A stretch of 32,000 nucleotides of DNA. Source: Amoeboradix gromovi X-113 (taxonomy: Eukaryota > Fungi > Sanchytriomycota). The translations under genes were made by a program, and so were the position numbers. The stretch is taken from NCBI GenBank assembly GCA_018985225.1, contig JADGIF010000001.1, positions 1 to 32,000 on the forward strand. Direction: 5' to 3'. This document shows, in pieces, positions 4,182 to 17,337 of this stretch (positions are counted from its first letter, which is position 1; the number at the start of each line of letters is the position of its first letter). The notes below the pieces were generated by a model. The model saw only the letters and a program-made list of their open reading frames with translations, did no database searches and was not told the DNA's origin.

Positions 4182-6872
4182 TCATTGTAATAACTTAGTT
4201 AATTGCTTCTTTATTCCCTTCTCACTCAGCTCCTCATCTTTTATTTTGTGAATAAACTGAGTCAATGCCGTCGTTGTCTGCATGTTTATGTTACTATTTG
4301 TTATGCACTTGATCAGCATCATTGGATCTTTTATTCCTACGAAATGTTTTATGATTATTCCAACAATGCTTATTATGCTTGGTAGTCGCTCTACATCATA
4401 GCATTTGAACAGCTTGAATAGAATCATTTCTAGTAACTGACTGTTTACTTGCACATCTGTAAACAAAACGCTAATGTTTTCTTTTATTATCATCATGTAT
4501 CTCTGCATTATTCCCTCATTAGCAATCTCCAACAGTCCAAAACTATTACCCAGCAATATAGCTCTCTCTTCTCCAAAAGATTCTGAACTCATCATGGTCA
4601 TACTTTGCTCTACGACTGTTATAAACGATTTTGTTAGTTTATGCAAATAATGGCTTTGGACTATACTGTCATCTACATTCTCATTTAGTATCTCTGTTTC
4701 CATCAGATGGCGTTTAGATATTAATGGTGCCATGAATAACAAGAATGGTTTCAGAATAAATGTCAGCAATACTTTGTGCTGACTGGCTTTGCTGTTATCT
4801 ACACACGGTATGATCATGTTGGTAATGATCAAATTCCAGTATTTTAAATGAAGTTCTACTACATCCGAAGTAAATACAAAAGTACTCAGAATGCTGATCG
4901 CCAGTTCATTCTCGTAGAATAACGGCCATGCTAGTGCTAGCCCTAGCAAATCGTAGCACTGAGTTGCTAGCAAGTTAATTTGGATGTTTATTGGCGACTC
5001 ACTGATGCTATTTGCGTTGAAATTGGGTGAATTAGGCTTTCGTAATATTTGATTACGATCAATGCTACTTGGCCCAATAAATTTGTTAGCATGCATAATG
5101 GAATGTAGATCCTTTAAACCTTGGCAAATGTATTCCAAAAACGAATTGTACAACTGTCTGATATTGACAGGTATCTCAATAATACTAGATTTCAAAGGGT
5201 CCAGCAAAACGTTTCTTAGACGAAGGAATTGCTCGGCTAAAATTAAAAAGCTTATCAAATCTTCCGAATTTGGATATACAGTGTTAAAATCCGTGTTGAT
5301 ATTAAATACCAAAAGCTGGGGTTTAAAATTGGGGATTGGCACTTTTTGTAATAATGCAAACAAATCATTATCCATGGCGTGACTTAGCAAAGGAATACAG
5401 CAAATGCTGAACTTCATAGCTATTGGGACCGTATCATTCAGTATAATAGATGGGGCTATTTGGCTATAGTTGTTGTACAGTATACGAGAATGATGCATAC
5501 AAATGGTTTGAGTAATGGAACTAGCATTCTTGAAATGGCGATTACAAAGACATTGCTCAAGAATATACAGGGAGTCGTTAGGCAGTTTCTTTGCAAGCAG
5601 TAATACAACCTTGGTGAATTGCTCATTTTGATCAAACTGAGCAAGCAATAAACAAAGTAGATCGTGCAGCTTCTTTTGATTTAAAAGATCAGGCTGAATA
5701 TTACGAATAATGGTAGTCAGTACTTGGCAGGATTTGGTCAAACCCCATTTGCTGCCATTCAACATGATTAAATCTAAAGACGTTAGAGCATGCTCTCTAC
5801 CTAAGGATCCCAGAATAGATTGTACCTTGGACATTGCCTGTTGAATGTAAATCTTGTCTTCATCTTGTTGCTCATTGATAAGAGGCTTAACAGCTACACA
5901 GCAGTGTAAAATAGGAGAAATATCGCTGACTTTAAATTTACAGCAGTAGTCAAACAAATAAAGACTGTATAGGCAGATTGGAAACGTTTGATTAGAAAAC
6001 TGCAAACCTACTTGATAAAATGCATTAACCACATCCAACGATGGATTGGGATTTGATTTCTTAAACACATCTAGAAACTGTATGTAGAACTCACCCGTGA
6101 TTTCCAGCATACAATACTGCTGCAATGCAGTGTGCAGATTTGGGTCGATCAAAATTGGAGCTAAAATATTTGGGCGAACGCTGATATTGGCAATAACACT
6201 TAACAAATGAATGTCGTTTTTAATAACGTCCTCCACATTAGTAGATTTTATATGAGGAATGATGGATTGAATCACAAACTGAATAAAGTCGAGATTGTCT
6301 TTGTACAGTTCAAGAGAGTTCTCCAATATTTCTAGTAAAATAGCGCAAGGATCTACAAGATACAATTCAAAGACGGGCTTGATATTGTTTTGAACAAATA
6401 GCCATTCACTTAAAAAGGGAGCTATCTCATCTAGCACTACCAATTCGGATAATATCATCAAGGTGAATGAATTGAAAGGAGGATGAACTAGTTTAGGCAA
6501 TTCTTTAACATTCTTTTCAAGATAGACAGCCATCAGCTGAGCACTCTTCTTTAATATGACATTGTTAACCTGAGTTTGAGTCAGTTTGGAATAAAAGTGA
6601 GTCAAATTGACATCATTGTACTTGCAGATGCGCTTCATAAGTAAAGTGATAAGACTGACTATGAACATTAGTTGGCCCATTTGGTTCTCACCAATTGAGG
6701 AATTCAAAACATCCAAGATTTGAATAGAAAACTGACTGTTGTCAATCATTCGCATCATAATAACTTCTAGCTCCTTAACTTTCTGCAATTGATTATTACA
6801 ATAAGCTTGCTTTAGTTCCACCAAATACTGCATTACTTCAAGGAGTCCAGAAAATATATTGATGAATGTCAT
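4182..6872 (-). CDS. HEAT/ARM-repeat karyopherin, probably a divergent Exportin-5/Msn5
   Basis: 896-aa Leu/Ile-rich helical ORF. Segment LHLKYWNLIITNMIIPCVDNSKASQHKVLLTFILKPFLLFM resembles the Exportin-5 C-terminal region as I recall it. Start codon uncertain. Confidence 0.55.
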   Translation of the reverse strand: MTFINIFSGLLEVMQYLVELKQAYCNNQLQKVKELEVIMMRMIDNSQFSIQILDVLNSSIGENQMGQLMFIVSLITLLMKRICKYNDVNLTHFYSKLTQTQVNNVILKKSAQLMAVYLEKNVKELPKLVHPPFNSFTLMILSELVVLDEIAPFLSEWLFVQNNIKPVFELYLVDPCAILLEILENSLELYKDNLDFIQFVIQSIIPHIKSTNVEDVIKNDIHLLSVIANISVRPNILAPILIDPNLHTALQQYCMLEITGEFYIQFLDVFKKSNPNPSLDVVNAFYQVGLQFSNQTFPICLYSLYLFDYCCKFKVSDISPILHCCVAVKPLINEQQDEDKIYIQQAMSKVQSILGSLGREHALTSLDLIMLNGSKWGLTKSCQVLTTIIRNIQPDLLNQKKLHDLLCLLLAQFDQNEQFTKVVLLLAKKLPNDSLYILEQCLCNRHFKNASSITQTICMHHSRILYNNYSQIAPSIILNDTVPIAMKFSICCIPLLSHAMDNDLFALLQKVPIPNFKPQLLVFNINTDFNTVYPNSEDLISFLILAEQFLRLRNVLLDPLKSSIIEIPVNIRQLYNSFLEYICQGLKDLHSIMHANKFIGPSSIDRNQILRKPNSPNFNANSISESPINIQINLLATQCYDLLGLALAWPLFYENELAISILSTFVFTSDVVELHLKYWNLIITNMIIPCVDNSKASQHKVLLTFILKPFLLFMAPLISKRHLMETEILNENVDDSIVQSHYLHKLTKSFITVVEQSMTMMSSESFGEERAILLGNSFGLLEIANEGIMQRYMMIIKENISVLFTDVQVNSQLLEMILFKLFKCYDVERLPSIISIVGIIIKHFVGIKDPMMLIKCITNSNINMQTTTALTQFIHKIKDEELSEKGIKKQLTKLLQ

Positions 6873-7786
6873 CTTCTTCTCAATACAATCTTGGCATTTA
6901 AAAAGCCGTAAGTTATACTAATAGTGGTAATTTTTTCATAACACAGCATATTTTGATAGTCTCCAGTACTTATTTGTAAGACCAAGGTATTGTTCTCGTA
7001 CAGTCCTATAGATTCACAATGTTTGTAGAGGCCATTAAATATTTTGTTCCGGATGTCTTTGCATCTGCAAAGGTCTAGCACTTGTTTTCTCCTGAGAGTT
7101 CTGAATGAATGCTTTGCCATAAATGCCTTGTAAATTGGATTAGTACCTTTCTTTGTGAAATTCCATTTAGATATGTTAGCAATCACATCGAATGGAAGTA
7201 GTTTTCTACGAATGGATCCAACACTGTTGACCACAATCATCTTTGACCTTGCGTTCTGGTTAAAGGGCTCTAAATTCAGCCCACGTAAATCTAATCTCTT
7301 AGCTGACAACACTGCACCATGTCCCCGAATATCATCCCCATACCAGTCTTGTATCGCGGCAAAGTATTTGATAATTTCCGATTGCCTTGCACTCTTGTAT
7401 TTCGGGTCCCTGTTTTTGCATTCAATTCTTAGTATACTGCCATTGGAGTATTTGAAAGCAATATCCACAAGGTTGTTATTGACAAAATTATTATTTTCGT
7501 CCCTTCTGGAGTTGTCCTGTGTCATCAATATTTGATAGGGATCGTGCTCAAGTAATGGTTCAATCTCAGAAACGTCTCGAAAGAATGTAATTCTCTTATA
7601 CTTGAGAGGAAATGCATCTTTTATATTCAACTGTCGTAATAATCTCTTATGTAGTCCTGAGTGGGGATAGCATAATTCTATTGCAACTGCATATTGAAAC
7701 GTGTATCCCTGCCCGCAATTCTCGTTTAGTTTAATAAATTCTGACGCTTCAGCCAAGGCACTAAGATACTTGAAAGGGTTCTGCAT
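6869..7786 (-). CDS. Putative PD-(D/E)XK (Mrr/restriction endonuclease-like) nuclease
   Basis: Intact 305-aa ORF with GYTFQ (motif I-like), VDIAF...RIECKNR (D...ExK), and a following helix plus GAVLS strand typical of the Mrr catalytic fold. Confidence 0.5.
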   Translation of the reverse strand: MQNPFKYLSALAEASEFIKLNENCGQGYTFQYAVAIELCYPHSGLHKRLLRQLNIKDAFPLKYKRITFFRDVSEIEPLLEHDPYQILMTQDNSRRDENNNFVNNNLVDIAFKYSNGSILRIECKNRDPKYKSARQSEIIKYFAAIQDWYGDDIRGHGAVLSAKRLDLRGLNLEPFNQNARSKMIVVNSVGSIRRKLLPFDVIANISKWNFTKKGTNPIYKAFMAKHSFRTLRRKQVLDLCRCKDIRNKIFNGLYKHCESIGLYENNTLVLQISTGDYQNMLCYEKITTISITYGFLNAKIVLRRR

Positions 7787-8479: not shown

Positions 8480-9812
8480 ATGCTAGGTGTAATCATCGAT
8501 GTTGTCAACTTGATGGGCTTATTATACACGCAAACACAAAAGATGAAAAGGAATAGTGAAGAGTTGAAGTCTCTGATCACGCGTGTATCCTTGTTGGAAA
8601 GCGTACTAAGCCAAATAGTAACTATCGAAACATCAAAAAGTACAGACCTAGTTTTGGGGCATGTCAAGGAAGTCTTGGAAGAAATCATTAGAGAAATAAA
8701 TATAGTACATGAACTTAATGTTGCGTTGAGACTAGGACTAGCTGGTGGCCATAAAGAAAATATTGACAAATATCAATACAAGCTGGATGAATTAACAATG
8801 CAGTTAAATTTGACATTCCAAATTGATAGCAGAGTTGAGCAATTCAAAGGGTCCAAATTAATGGAAGCTAGAATGAATGAAATCTTGAAGAAAACGGATC
8901 ACATGAATACCGCTCAATTGACTCAAATGGTCCAAAATGATTTACCAGAGGAGTTGAAGAAAGGATAGGAAGAATCTATAAATCTAGGTAGAAAAGTGGT
9001 AGTTGATATGAACAATTTACAACAATTGCAGGAAAAAGTGCTTATAAAGGAAAAAGGCTTTAAAATTGATTTTATTAGCAACAAAGCATTGGAACTATCA
9101 GAGGACATATGCGGTAAGGGTAGCTTTGGAATTGTCTACTTAGGATATTGGCAAGACATCCATGTAGCCATCAAGAAAATAAATAACGTTCCGTTTCGAG
9201 AGATCGAAGAGTCTAGTATAAATACCGATTCAATGCAAATATCCAAAGCAGCATTGAGAGAAGTAAGAGCATTTGAGGTGCCGCAAAAGTGTCCATTTAT
9301 TGTCAAAATGTATGGCATCACATCCATGAATGGGTGCCTTGGTATTGTGATGGAATATGTCAGCAATAATTCCTTGTTTCATTGGATATACCAAGATGAA
9401 GAAAATTACGTAGACGAAATACTCATGAAGGGTATTGCAAGCAAAATAGCAAGAGCATTAGCATTTATGCATGAAAAAAAGATAGCACATAATGATATTA
9501 AAAGCAACAATGTGATGCTAGATGAATTGTTTATTCCTAAATTAATAGATTTAGGTACTGTCAAGCTAGTTGATTTAGTTTTAATTGCGAGTAGTAAGAG
9601 ATCCGCCCAGAATAATGGTGCAGTACGATGGAAAGCTCCTGAATATTTACAAGCTACAATGAGGAATGAGGAATGCGAAATTACAAAAAGACTATCCATT
9701 TTGTGGTGACGTGTACAGTTATTCGATTTTATTAGGCGAAATGTTTTCTAAAGAATTGCCATTCAGCATGTTTGATAATGACGAAGATATCAAGAAGGGT
9801 CCAAGTAGGTGA
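8480..9812 (+). pseudogene. Disrupted TKL-type protein kinase with an N-terminal MLKL-like four-helix-bundle domain
   Basis: ORFs 8480..8968 and 8996..9709 share a frame, separated by TAG at 8966-8968. Kinase motifs GKGSFG, VAIK, HNDIKSNN, DLG and WKAPE are present. The DVYS-SILLGE segment follows in another frame after about 9690, and the C-lobe is then truncated. Confidence 0.75.
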
Positions 9813-10161: not shown

Positions 10162-10256
10162 ATATACGTATACTGTACCAGAGTTTTACTAGCAGACCAG
10201 CTCCATTTAACAACACTACGGCAAAATCCGTGTATTTGGGATCTCAGAATAGACAA

Positions 10257-10399
10257 TTTATATCGAAATTTGAAACATAAATACTCTCTACCTCCTATTC
10301 TTTATTTCAATCATTATTTCAGAGACATAGTACAACTATTGGCTCTACAATAATGATTTCAAATAATTTAACACAATTATTCTTTAAAAACTAGACTAA
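10257..10399 (+). repeat. Fragment of the family B (Sola2/Fanzor1-like) element
   Basis: TATCGAAATTTGAAA-ATAAATA-TCT-TAC, TCTTTATTTCAA and CATAGTAC match 30272..30390. Positions 10385..10399 (TAAAAACTAGACTAA) are identical to the family B TIR core. Confidence 0.7.
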
Positions 10400-10561
10400 G
10401 AAATGTTTCATACTTTAATCTAGTCCTCTCTAATTAGACTAAATATAAATTATGGAATGACTGAATTTTTGCGTTTTGTGCTAGACATTATAAAAGTTCA
10501 TTAACATAATAATTTAATTTTACAATTGATCCCCAAATTAAAACATTATTTCTGTTAAAAA

Positions 10562-11990
10562 ATGATTACCTCAGTAGAAAAGCAAAAATTTCATTCTGAC
10601 CATGACTGGTATAAACTTATAACAGAAGATCATTACAAAAATCAAATGTTTCCTCACATATTTCCAGCGGATTTTCAAGAGGAAATTGGATTCGGGATAT
10701 TTTCAGATACTACAGAAGTTCCTTGCTATTTCAATGTGAAAAGTAGATATGACTATACTATGATAACAATAATTCATCCAGATATGATCACTGAACATGT
10801 TGTAGATCCAGTTAGAGTTTCTCAGGGACAAACATCAAACCACAAATCTAAGATCAAAGATAAATTTACTATTAAACCCAAACTAGCAGAGGAGTTGTCT
10901 ACGATGAGCGACTTTAAAGAATATGTTGATCTGAATAACAATACTGTAAATTTCCGGCTTTTGTTTAAGTACTTACTTGTGTCTATGAAAAAATGGAAAA
11001 GTTAAAGATTTCTTTCTTTGGATTCAATCGCTTTGCTACCGCAGGAAAAATTATCCCAAAAATGAAGGAATTTGGTGAAAGAAAAGGTATTCGCTATATT
11101 GTACATGCTGATATCAAGAATTTCTATGACAGTTTTTATTTACATGCAAATTCATGGAGCATTTTAGGGAGTAAAAAGCAAGTAAAGCATTACTTTGTTC
11201 AAAAGAGCTATGGCCCCGTAATTTGGAAACTGGAATCCAAAAATGTATGGATGGTGCAACTGTAGGATTGCCGATTGCTCAAACTATTTTTTCGCACTTT
11301 GCAGAGCTATTTCTAATCAAAATGGATGCTCTGCTAGCAGAAAAATGCCCCGAAATAGTCGCTATTAGAGTTGATGATTCCTATTTTATATTTGGAAAGA
11401 CAAAAGATGAATGCTCAAAAATTCTCTTTCAGTTATCCAAACTGTTGAGGTCATACAAATTCTATTTAAATGGTTTAAAGTCAACTTGTGTTGAGAATTT
11501 AACACCTCAAAAGTGGGATGACTTGATGGTAAAGCCAAAAGCTTGCGAGGAAGTAGTAAACATGTTCAGATTGCCTCAAGGTCAACAAAACGAGTGTTCT
11601 ATTAAGTTACTTCTTGATCATCAATTTCTCTGTCAATGGTTTATAGAAGATTGGGATGTAGAAACGGAAGAGGATTTATTAACACGGCTATTGCAGGATT
11701 TTCCGTCCACCCACGTTGCGATTTTTAAAAAAATAATTGATCATGAACTAGCTCAAAAGTTTGTCTCTGTATTTTTCAAAAGAAATGAGTATTTGTATGC
11801 AACTCATCCAACCATCCAATTAATTTGGTGCTTATGGGTTTGTTTTAAGAGAAGCTTGAGAATTGGTAATTATTCCAGTAAAATTAGAGAGCTAGACGAT
11901 CCGTTGATCAACTTGTTAATGGATATGATCGAAAAGAAACCCACTTCTAAACCATATGGGTATTTTAAAAAGCTAGTAAATAATATATAG
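10562..11990 (+). pseudogene. Bacterial-type defence-associated reverse transcriptase (Drt3b/AbiA/AbiK-like), about 476 aa after correcting two -1 frameshifts
   Basis: Collinear motifs across three overlapping ORFs: VPCYFNVK...ITIIHP; ISFF...HADIKNFYDSFYLHANSW; NLETGIQ...TVGLPIAQTIFSHFAELFLIKMD; IRVDDSYFIF; FYLNGLKS. Confidence 0.8.
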
Positions 11991-12851
11991 CTCTATCAGA
12001 TATCTAATATGATTTATTAACTGAGTTCTTTCTTTCAAATACTTGCAACATTTTATTTTACCTGGCTATATTCTAAATTATGTTGATCTAGCTGAGAAGT
12101 ACGCAAGTAGTTCACGTTCTGCAAAAAGATATTTAGATTTAAGAAAAGCTCTTAATGTGACAATATTCATTTATTTCTAGAAACAATGATCAAAGGTGTA
12201 AATGATATTCCACAAAATCTCAATGCCAAGATACGTCGTCACGAATCATTTGATCATTCTATTTTTCATTTACTATTGTGGATTTGTCATCCCAAAGGTT
12301 CATCTTTTCATTCAGAGAGACAAACAGCATCTGGCAGATCTGATTCATACTATTGCAAAAAATATAGACACGGAATTGAGTTCAAAGGACCCACCAGTTC
12401 AGACCTGAGTATGACTAGTCGCTATTGGTGTCAATTTGAACAAATAAAAAATTTGAAAATAACAGATTAATAATTACAGCCAAAATTGCTGGAGAAACTC
12501 GCGAGAATCAAGAACGATACTATCAAGAATGGAAAGAACGAAATTTCCCTGTTACATGTGATATTTACAATGCTGCACAATTTCAAGACGAATCCAAGTA
12601 TAATGAATTTGGAATTGAAGATTTCGGAAAATCGTTTTTTGGGAGCAATAGCGTCTCATGGAAATTCTCAAAACCATATTGGTGCAAATATTAAAACAGA
12701 CTGGAAGCGATTGAATGAATAAGTAAATATTGAATTTTCATTAATTTTACTTTTTGATTGGGTTGTGGATTTTATCTAATAATTTTAGCGTTTTTGGACT
12801 TTTGACTTTAGTCTCGATTATCTCAAAATCATATTTTGCTAACTTGTCTAC

Positions 12852-12980
12852 TTATTGTACTTTGTGTCCCATATTTCTTGCTGCCATATTTTCTTTTTGT
12901 GCTAGTAAATGACAGTTTGTACATTCAAATATCCACATTGGGTTTCCATCTCTGCGCATTCCTCAATTAAACGCTTGAAT
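12852..12980 (-). pseudogene. Fanzor2/TnpB C-terminal remnant
   Basis: 12935..12852 translates WIFECTNCHLLAQKENMAARNMGHKVQ*, which aligns with YTCTNCHLKIDRDHMAARKI of the 16954 ORF and is also similar at DNA level. Confidence 0.65.
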
Positions 12981-16733: not shown

Positions 16734-17337
16734 TTATAGTAACGGCTTGACTATTTTCTTGAATAAATAATTTATTGCGAATTTGTACATATTTTTGTAT
16801 CATTTCAAGACTTTTCCAGATTTTTTTAACACCTTAAACACTCGATATTCTTCCTTTTCGCAAATGGTAAATCAATTCTAAATAAATAACTAGCAGGTAC
16901 AGCATAAAAAGACAAATGATCTTATATACTTACCCTCGTTCAATACGAGCCAGATGCTAAGTAGCTTGTCGAGCAAGGTCGCAAGAAACTTGGCTACAAT
17001 GTCCCATTACACATTCAAGCAACGCTTGAAGTTCAAGTGTAAAAAAAGAGGAAAGACGATGGTCGAATGCAATGAACCATTTACTAGTCAGACATGTACA
17101 AGGTGTGGTACTCTAAAGAAAACCAATTTAGAAACATACACATGTACCAATTGTCATTTGAAGATAGATAGAGACCATATGGCAGCAAGGAAGATATACA
17201 TCAAGTATCTGTATCCTTATTCAATCCCACCTCAGGGTAGTGCAAGCGTGAGCAGTCACTGCAACGGAGATCTAGTACGGATAGTTTCTCTGTGGAAATT
17301 CTCGATTTTCTCGGAAATCAGTACTTTTAACGAGGAG
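16734..17337 (+). mobile_element. Family A copy 1: internally deleted IS607-type Fanzor2 element
   Basis: 5' region shared with copies 2 and 3. Contains the Fanzor2 C-terminal half LIYLPSFNTSQM...SHYTFKQRL...NEPFTSQTCTRCG...CTNC...DRDHMAARKI and the right end TTTTAACGAGGAG. Left boundary approximate. Confidence 0.88.

Follow-up and report, generated by a model that had tools for sequence, protein, structure and literature searches.

We analysed the first 32,000 nucleotides (nt) of contig JADGIF010000001.1 of the sanchytrid fungus Amoeboradix gromovi X-113 (hereafter the window), which is contig C435 in an assembly of 10.5 Mb and 1319 contigs. Between positions 10562 and 11990, its plus strand carries a reverse transcriptase (RT) gene that is spread over three overlapping open reading frames (ORFs) at 10562-11005 (frame 2), 10993-11265 (frame 1) and 11223-11990 (frame 0), jointly comprising approximately 476 codons. 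An earlier sequence-only reading of this stretch had described the three ORFs, their joint length and the motifs PCYFNVK..IIHP, SFF, DIKNFYDSFYLHANSW, TVGLPIAQTIFSHFAELFLIKMD, RVDDSYFIF and LNGLKS, all of which we recovered from the ORF list and its translations. A random frame in this AT-rich locus meets a stop every ~13 codons, and the probability of 476 codons without a stop is ~1e-17; each of the six fixed frames across the RT region contains 19-42 stops. The three pieces of the gene were searched, aligned and folded separately, and the orthologue P0007 served as a stand-in for the continuous protein.

The limits of the pieces were set by alignment with the orthologue L027, in which pieces 1 and 2 and most of piece 3 share one frame. 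Piece 1 (10562-10975, plus strand like all parts of the gene, frame 2, ~138 codons from an ATG at 10562) encodes the N-terminal region and the fingers, with the N-terminal motif HDS..D..L that is common to the paralogues and the motif K....IIHP; it is 42% identical to L027 over 111 amino acids and also aligns with the N-termini of paralogues, including C897:5454-5837. At break 1 (10973-10978), the reading passes from frame 2 to frame 1 (..FKYL / TCVYEKM..) with one base fewer than in the orthologue. Piece 2 (10975-11175, frame 1) covers fingers and palm, is 48% identical to L027 and contains motif A, DIKNFYDSFYLHANSW, at 11110-11157, whose catalytic Asp codon lies at 11110-11112 and whose column is shared in the alignment with bacterial DRT6 and DRT4. 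At break 2 (11173-11177), the reading passes from frame 1 to frame 0, again with one base fewer, in or beside a run of five A. Piece 3 (11178-11990, frame 0) encodes the rest of the palm and the C-terminal helices: motif B' (TVGLPIAQ) at 11259-11282, motif C (RVDDSY) at 11367-11384 with its Asp-Asp pair at 11373-11378, the motif E region (LNGLKS) and an all-helical C-terminal domain at ~11514-11987, followed by the stop codon at 11988-11990. The frames had originally been joined at the ORF overlaps; the alignment with L027 moves the breaks away from those sites, to 10975/10976 and to the A5 run at 11173-11177.

Searches with the PADLOC models placed the gene among the UG/Abi-type RTs. Piece 3 matched Drt6 best (3.9e-18, residues 5-239, 63.6 bits), followed by Drt4 (3.1e-13), AbiP2 (4.6e-11), Drt8, UG14 and AbiK (1.2e-6), and piece 2 matched Drt4 (1.6e-8) as well as UG30, UG14, Drt6 and AbiK, with 25-32 bits against DRT6/DRT4. 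The Pfam model RVT_1 stayed below threshold (12.7 bits, where 29.6 are required; 0.1). A profile of the window subfamily ranked the proteins of the PDB in the order Abi-P2 (6e-23), DRT6 (5e-20), a SUMO-tagged RT (26cz, 5.6e-18), DRT4 (1e-14), Drt3b (9e-14) and AbiK (5e-11); Cas6-RT-Cas1 and a group II maturase scored far lower, and retron, group II and retroviral RTs were far below these or absent. Abi-P2 (7r08) also topped the list when piece 3 was compared with the PDB by sequence (1.2e-5). Because the UG/Abi profiles outscored the other RT profiles, the locus is, judged by its sequence, a class 1 UG/Abi-type RT of the group that contains DRT6, DRT4, Abi-P2 and AbiK. The sequence-only reading had called it Drt3b/AbiA/AbiK-like, of which the Abi/DRT type stands; its nearest relatives are instead DRT6, DRT4 and Abi-P2, the Drt3b model matched weakly (6.6e-6 on piece 3 and 6.3e-4 on piece 2), and AbiA was absent from the sequence matches.

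An exhaustive phmmer search with piece 3 against 1.84 billion representatives returned 41 matches, four of them below 1e-10 and all four sanchytrid-like. The remaining matches were proteins of ~500 residues, and those that we checked (from Thermoflavimicrobium, Flagellimonas and a Planctomycetota metagenome-assembled genome, the last one named Drt4) were true bacterial DRT6/DRT4 proteins. Against the DRT6/DRT4 models, such true members scored 300-640 bits, compared with 22-64 bits for the window pieces and 45-125 bits for the paralogues; the window gene neither reaches a full-length match at the level of the true members nor falls inside the bacterial DRT6/DRT4 clade. The neighbours in the ESM Atlas were bacterial RVT_1 clusters. 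Running the family profile through a word-indexed protein search gave self matches only, no relatives of the subfamily were found in IMG/VR viral contigs or JGI metagenome contigs, and an Rfam scan of the whole window gave no match.

What defines class 1 UG/Abi RTs is an RT domain with a C-terminal helical repeat (alpha-Rep) domain (PMC9226505). In the AlphaFold2 (AF2) model of piece 3 (predicted local distance difference test, pLDDT, 80), residues 114-271 form ten helices, with a pLDDT of 84-96 over most of them, and as modelled this part is the HEAT-like alpha-Rep C-terminal domain of class 1. The model aligned with DRT6 at Z 10.3 (255 of 271 residues), DRT4 at 9.5, UG15 at 8.9, AbiK at 7.8 and Abi-P2 at 7.1. 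Only these five covered the palm as well as the helical domain (235-258 residues), whereas retroviral RTs aligned with 70-90 palm residues only; the resemblance of the helical C-terminus to the Abi/DRT families, which had been suspected from the letters, thus extends in the model across the helices of DRT6, DRT4 and AbiK. The orthologue P0007 was also modelled with AF2 (pLDDT 76); the top Foldseek matches of this model were Abi-P2, DRT6, UG15/DRT4, AbiK and AbiA, and the best VIA alignment was with Abi-P2 (Z 14.2, root-mean-square deviation 2.8 over 163 residues). Group II RTs and RTs of diversity-generating retroelements almost tied with it in VIA, over palm and fingers only.

The catalytic set of the window gene consists of the motif A Asp (DIKNFY, 11110-11112) and the motif C Asp-Asp pair (RVDDSY, 11373-11378), the latter being Asp67/Asp68, which occupy the hairpin turn of motif C in the model of piece 3. 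Motif C reads R-Y-[VI]-D-D-[YF] in the bacterial relatives, R-Y-R-D-D-Y in Abi-P2 and R-V-D-D-S-Y in the window gene, with I-D-D-A, H-D-D-S or F-D-E-A in the other members of its subfamily. Most of the other paralogues have D-N, D-K or D-T at the Asp pair, which is N-N in C897b; C1105 and C966 read C-R-D-N, in which the Arg of Abi-P2 is retained and the second Asp is gone. The motif A Asp is replaced by Asn in C420, C367 and C1152. Because the other paralogues lost the Asp pair, the motif A Asp or both, the complete catalytic set is confined to the subfamily of the window gene.

Nineteen matches to the Drt6 model were found in the assembly, and the RT family comprises 17 loci once the telomerase locus C834 is set aside. 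Thirteen of them each consist of one ORF of 432-659 codons without interruption, so that the intact paralogues asked for by the sequence-only reading do exist, together with orthologues in related genomes. The four disrupted copies are C966, with an in-frame TAG, C1234, with two stops, and the window gene and C897a, both with frame breaks. Pairwise identity between paralogues is 20-58%. All six paralogues that were scanned matched the PADLOC models Drt6, Drt4, AbiP2 and AbiK, and none matched Pfam RVT_1. The RT paralogues also match entries of EukProt EP00835 (Amoeboradix gromovi) exactly. C897b has an N-terminal AMPK1_CBM domain, and in C908 (L009:571-2547), a protein of 659 residues, a ubiquitin-family domain (residues 482-545, 6.7e-9) lies beyond the RT and helical regions.

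Two pairs of RT genes stand in tandem on the minus strand, at C897:4444-8404 and C218:37642-40721, each with a 'b'-type gene upstream and an 'a'-type gene 300-770 bp downstream, a layout that is reminiscent of bacterial two-RT systems such as DRT3. C897a is the closest paralogue of the window gene, and its partner C897b lacks the Asp pair of motif C.

The family extends to other sanchytrids. Orthologues are present in Sanchytrium tribonematis (P0002, P0005 and P0011), and two metagenome contigs from ENA carry relatives of the window gene amid MYST, GH18, kinesin and Piwi genes. Because the housekeeping genes of these contigs are 63-69% identical to those of A. gromovi, the contigs derive from sanchytrid-like organisms, and because the RT is only 33-54% identical, it evolves faster. 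We computed an unrooted tree by maximum likelihood from 22 rows of eukaryotic and 30 of bacterial origin; it has many long branches, and its bacteria were taken from the nearest hits only. A single branch with a support of 97 in the SH-like approximate likelihood ratio test (SH-aLRT) parts all eukaryotic rows from bacterial DRT6/DRT4; the window subfamily (the window gene, P0007, P0008, C897a and P0011; support 99) adjoins the bacterial side, and sequences of A. gromovi and S. tribonematis pair within subfamilies. Judged from these sequences, the pattern fits an old transfer followed by expansion and not contamination. Of the earlier proposal of a horizontally acquired defence RT, the bacterial type and the residence in the genome hold up; it is not a lone acquisition, given 17 divergent paralogues and a second sanchytrid genus.

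Among known systems, DRT6 (UG12) and DRT4 (UG15) gave the best PADLOC matches for the window gene and nearly all paralogues. They share with it the motif order A, B', C, E, a palm followed by helical repeats (with the Z values of 10.3 and 9.5 given above) and the form of a stand-alone single polypeptide of ~480-540 residues. They differ in that the window family lies outside them by one supported branch and occupies a eukaryotic nucleus in 17 copies, in motif C (R-V-D-D-S-Y as opposed to RY[VI]DD[YF]), in their conserved blocks GN.LD and QDGQT.GIPIGPDTS, of which the window gene retains only parts, and in the frameshifts of the window copy. Abi-P2, which is encoded by P2-like prophages of E. 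coli, is the best match by sequence among solved structures and the top Foldseek and VIA match for the orthologue model, but identity is 14-20%, and the unusual conserved Arg at position x of its Y/FxDD motif (PMC2602772) is a Val in the window gene. Abi-P2 also has features of its own, namely its place in a prophage hypervariable region, a trimeric or hexameric form and a Tyr primer.

AbiK and AbiA of Lactococcus belong to the same class and share the fold, with AbiK aligning over most of the length (Z 7.8-13). However, the AbiK sequence match is weaker than those of the systems above (1.2e-6), the HEPN domain of AbiA is absent here, and both are plasmid-borne in bacteria. Drt3b (UG8) likewise belongs to class 1 of the UG/Abi RTs and has an alpha-Rep domain, but it acts together with an RNA and another RT, Drt3a, and no partner lies beside the window gene.

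Each of the two frame breaks amounts to the loss of one A. At break 1, FKYL (frame 2) and TCVYEKM (frame 1) of the window correspond to FDYLQTHIYDRM in a single frame of L027, and L028 retains V-Y there; the base is lost at 10975/10976, where no slippery run is found. At break 2, the window gene has 29 nt between the conserved SK and ELWPR, compared with 30 nt in L027. Other placements were rejected. The A6 run at 10987-10992 is too far downstream, since frame 1 is homologous already from 10975 (T-C-V-Y-E-K-M versus T-H-I-Y-D-R-M), and the C4 run at 11214-11217 is preceded by the conserved WPR in frame 0.

Introns do not account for the breaks either. GT..AG candidates of 17, 23, 26 and 35 nt are present at the ORF overlaps, but the orthologue leaves no space for an insert, and the presumed (unchecked) mini-intron grammar GTA...YTWATDYAG was matched at neither break. 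A conserved break position, as expected for an intron or a programmed shift, was also rejected because C897a, L027 and L028 change frame at other places. In the two orthologues these changes lie at L027:9080-9180 (one) and at L028:5900-6040 and 6730-6830 (two), and no clean GT..AG mini-introns were found there.

The gene therefore occupies neither one frame nor several frames joined by introns, and its two single-base losses make a full-length protein impossible by ordinary translation. We consider it quite likely, from the comparison of these sequences, that the window copy is a young pseudogene. In one public run with this DNA, a Logan contig spans 10300-12145 at depth 35 with 0 differences and 0 indels, which excludes an assembler artefact but not a sample artefact. 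The assembly is not riddled with indels, because the 13 uninterrupted paralogues contain 0 frameshifts in ~20.8 kb of coding sequence; by comparison, the subfamily with the Asp-Asp pair contains three in ~2.9 kb (P ~0.002 if they were evenly spread, a post hoc value).

It is possible, although we regard it as doubtful, that the gene is functional and that the breaks are amplification or sequencing errors, strain polymorphisms or sites of transcriptional slippage or ribosomal frameshifting in A-rich sequence. Such a reading would suit the long stretch free of in-frame stops and the loss of just one A at each break, and the genome was assembled from Illumina reads by SPAdes in its single-cell mode (PMC8371127). 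It would also suit C897a, which is broken in the same direction, once, within the heptamer A AAA AAG followed by TGA, at a place where the S. tribonematis orthologue is continuous. Against it stand the identical contig from a second assembler, the absence of frameshifts from the 13 paralogues and their concentration in the subfamily, the position of break 1 away from a slippery run, the frame changes of the environmental orthologues elsewhere, so that no site is conserved, and the decayed look of the adjoining kinase gene.

Taken as a whole, the locus is probably a recently inactivated copy of a sanchytrid-specific family that derives from a bacterial class 1 UG/Abi RT. The ancestor would have entered the lineage before the split of Amoeboradix and Sanchytrium, and the family would then have acquired the base composition of its host and grown to 17 loci in A. 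gromovi, with eukaryotic domains (ubiquitin and a carbohydrate-binding module of the AMPK type) being added to some paralogues. Of its subfamilies, that of the window gene is nearest to the bacterial enzymes, and the intact protein would have measured ~480 residues, with a helical alpha-Rep-like domain after the RT fingers and palm.

Several points weigh against parts of this interpretation. The bacterial rows of the tree are DRT6/DRT4-like only, and the claim of monophyly therefore spans these rows and not the 42 UG/Abi groups. Motif C of the window gene lacks the aromatic residue of Y/FxDD, a gapless sequence alignment offsets the Asp pair by one, and it is the AF2 model alone that puts the pair at the hairpin turn. 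The second Asp is gone in most paralogues, which argues against a simple polymerase role across the family. As for the state of the window copy, the run behind the read check is probably the source sample, so that this check is not independent, and three pieces without an in-frame stop fit a very young pseudogene and a working gene (with breaks that are polymorphic, erroneous or bypassed) equally well.

We also considered the possibility that the family is a component or cargo of mobile elements, for example of DUF7869 DNA transposons, and that the window copy is a dead element. Dispersed repeats do flank the gene: a MITE-like repeat (resembling miniature inverted-repeat transposable elements) lies outside the gene in the 5' flank at 10246-10411 and has at least 14 copies of 70-89% identity on other contigs, and the 3' flank contains repeats at 12061-12402 and 12518-12876, with copies at 93%, 87% and 84% identity in the genome. 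The repeat at 12518-12876 also occurs just upstream of the paralogue C897b, and in the read layout a second contig overlaps at 12061-12145. Clustering of the ORFs around all RT loci yielded two recurrent neighbour families, one Fanzor/TnpB-like and the other DUF7869. DUF7869 transposase-like ORFs lie within ~3 kb of 4 of the 17 RT loci (C367, C384, C908 and C1105, the last with a homeodomain), directly upstream on the same strand at C367 and C384; given that the 10.5 Mb contain at least 29 loci of DUF7869, ~0.3 such neighbours would be expected.

Together with the disruption of four copies, this co-location speaks for an association with mobile elements; it may, however, only mirror shared regions that are rich in transposable elements and poor in genes. 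No pair of paralogues exceeds 58% protein identity, so there was no recent transposition, and orthologous pairs are kept across two genera. No endonuclease or integrase was found, and the surroundings of the window gene itself contain neither a DUF7869 ORF nor convincing terminal inverted repeats. We therefore regard a mobile origin of the family as improbable.

It is very unlikely that the gene belongs to a known eukaryotic RT type, that is, rvt, telomerase RT (TERT), Penelope-like elements (PLE) or retroelements with long terminal repeats (LTR) or of the long interspersed (LINE) type. A deep clade has been proposed to join UG RTs, TERT and PLE (PMC12632851), and the rvt genes, which are UG37 and present in fungi, resemble the sanchytrid family as RT genes that reside in fungal genomes, are non-mobile and possibly prime with a protein (PMC9226505). 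However, rvt is a different UG group, whose genes are larger, occur as single copies and have a coiled coil at the N-terminus, whereas the sanchytrid family is multi-copy with class 1 architecture; the UG37 model was absent from the 24 PADLOC hits, with no match in the pieces or in six paralogues, and no coiled-coil N-terminus was evident in the alignment. The sub-threshold RVT_1 score, the restriction of retroviral alignments to the palm and the lack of accessory retroelement domains nearby likewise speak against retroelements. The TERT of this genome is a separate locus with a Telomerase_RBD domain, and the exclusion of LTR, LINE, Penelope, TERT and rvt RTs by the sequence-only reading was borne out. 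This telomerase gene (C834, L043:3342-5765) has 807 codons with Telomerase_RBD and RVT_1, and its weak match to Drt6 (2.2e-5) agrees with a relationship between TERT and UG RTs that was put forward recently.

The surroundings of the gene are eukaryotic, as the sequence-only reading had stated and as domain matches confirm: a gene with MLKL_N and protein kinase domains lies upstream, IFT52 and MRS2 lie downstream, and a DEAD-box helicase, an amidase and a CDP-DAG synthase are found further out. The RT pieces have a GC content of 0.31-0.35 and a GC content at third codon positions (GC3) of 0.28-0.33, like the neighbouring genes. In agreement with the earlier account, domain scans of the neighbourhood found no gag, endonuclease, RNase H or integrase adjoining the RT gene. 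The prokaryotic host and the defence-island or mobile context of class 1 RTs are replaced here by a fungal host. Although BlobTools decontamination reduced the original assembly from 48.7 Mb to 10.5 Mb and thereby purged much bacterial DNA (PMC8371127), and although the nearest homologues outside the sanchytrids are bacterial, an RT from a co-sequenced bacterium or a chimeric contig, the test that had been proposed against residence, can practically be dismissed in view of the eukaryotic genes on either side on the same contig, the host-like GC and GC3, the 17 paralogues, some of them fused to ubiquitin or AMPK1_CBM, the orthologues that three further genomes carry next to genes for kinesin, Piwi and MYST, the low bit scores compared with true bacterial members and the separate clade of the eukaryotic copies in the tree.

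DRT4 and DRT6 form hexamers and carry out protein-primed, template-independent synthesis of single-stranded DNA, which turns toxic once a phage single-stranded DNA-binding protein shields it from a host exonuclease (PMC12783706). By analogy with these two systems, AbiK and Abi-P2, the intact sanchytrid protein would oligomerise and, with a tyrosine as primer and no template, synthesise single-stranded DNA, and this DNA would serve in conflict with viruses or mobile DNA. A more speculative extension, to which we give little credence, is that sanchytrids keep a working system against viruses or transposons in which the Asp-Asp subfamily would perform the protein-primed DNA synthesis and the degenerate paralogues, including those with ubiquitin or carbohydrate-binding fusions and those in tandem pairs, would act as sensors or regulators. 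If true, it would be a eukaryotic immune module of a sort not yet described.

Several bacterial immune modules have eukaryotic counterparts, among them cGAS-STING, viperin, gasdermin, TIR and Argonaute, and a stable, expanded and fast-diverging RT family in fungi would lengthen the list of immune parts that are common to the domains of life. In the literature, we found no paper on class 1 UG/Abi RTs resident in a eukaryote; the reference survey of UG/Abi RTs removed eukaryotic hits by design (PMC9226505), and the A. gromovi genome paper is silent on reverse transcriptases and gene transfer (PMC8371127). The family offers a natural series that starts with a subfamily whose catalytic set is complete and ends with degenerate paralogues bearing eukaryotic fusions, and it bears on the claimed movement of UG-type RTs from bacteria to eukaryotes, namely the proposed origin of telomerase (PMC12632851). 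The window copy is a data point on birth and death within the family and probably its least useful member for experiments.

Other features of the window were recorded alongside. On the minus strand, 4182-7786 holds two long adjacent ORFs of 896 and 305 codons without a Pfam or PADLOC match. A defence island formed with the neighbours found no support, as these two ORFs gave no such match, the kinase matched generic kinase models only and, apart from the Fanzor/TnpB-like and DUF7869 ORFs, no family of neighbours came up again at the other RT loci. A Fanzor/TnpB remnant, an ORF of ~145 residues with a Cas12f1-like TNB match (5.5e-19), lies at 16894-17337 and recurs on four other RT contigs; its recurrence near five RT loci probably reflects the abundance of such elements in the genome. 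The MLKL_N-kinase gene at 8480-9812 looks decayed: an in-frame TAG at 8966-8968 separates the MLKL_N and kinase parts, which share a frame, and a tandem duplication of 7 nt (aatgagg twice, ~9660-9673) puts kinase subdomains VIII (APE) and IX (DVYSY) into different frames.

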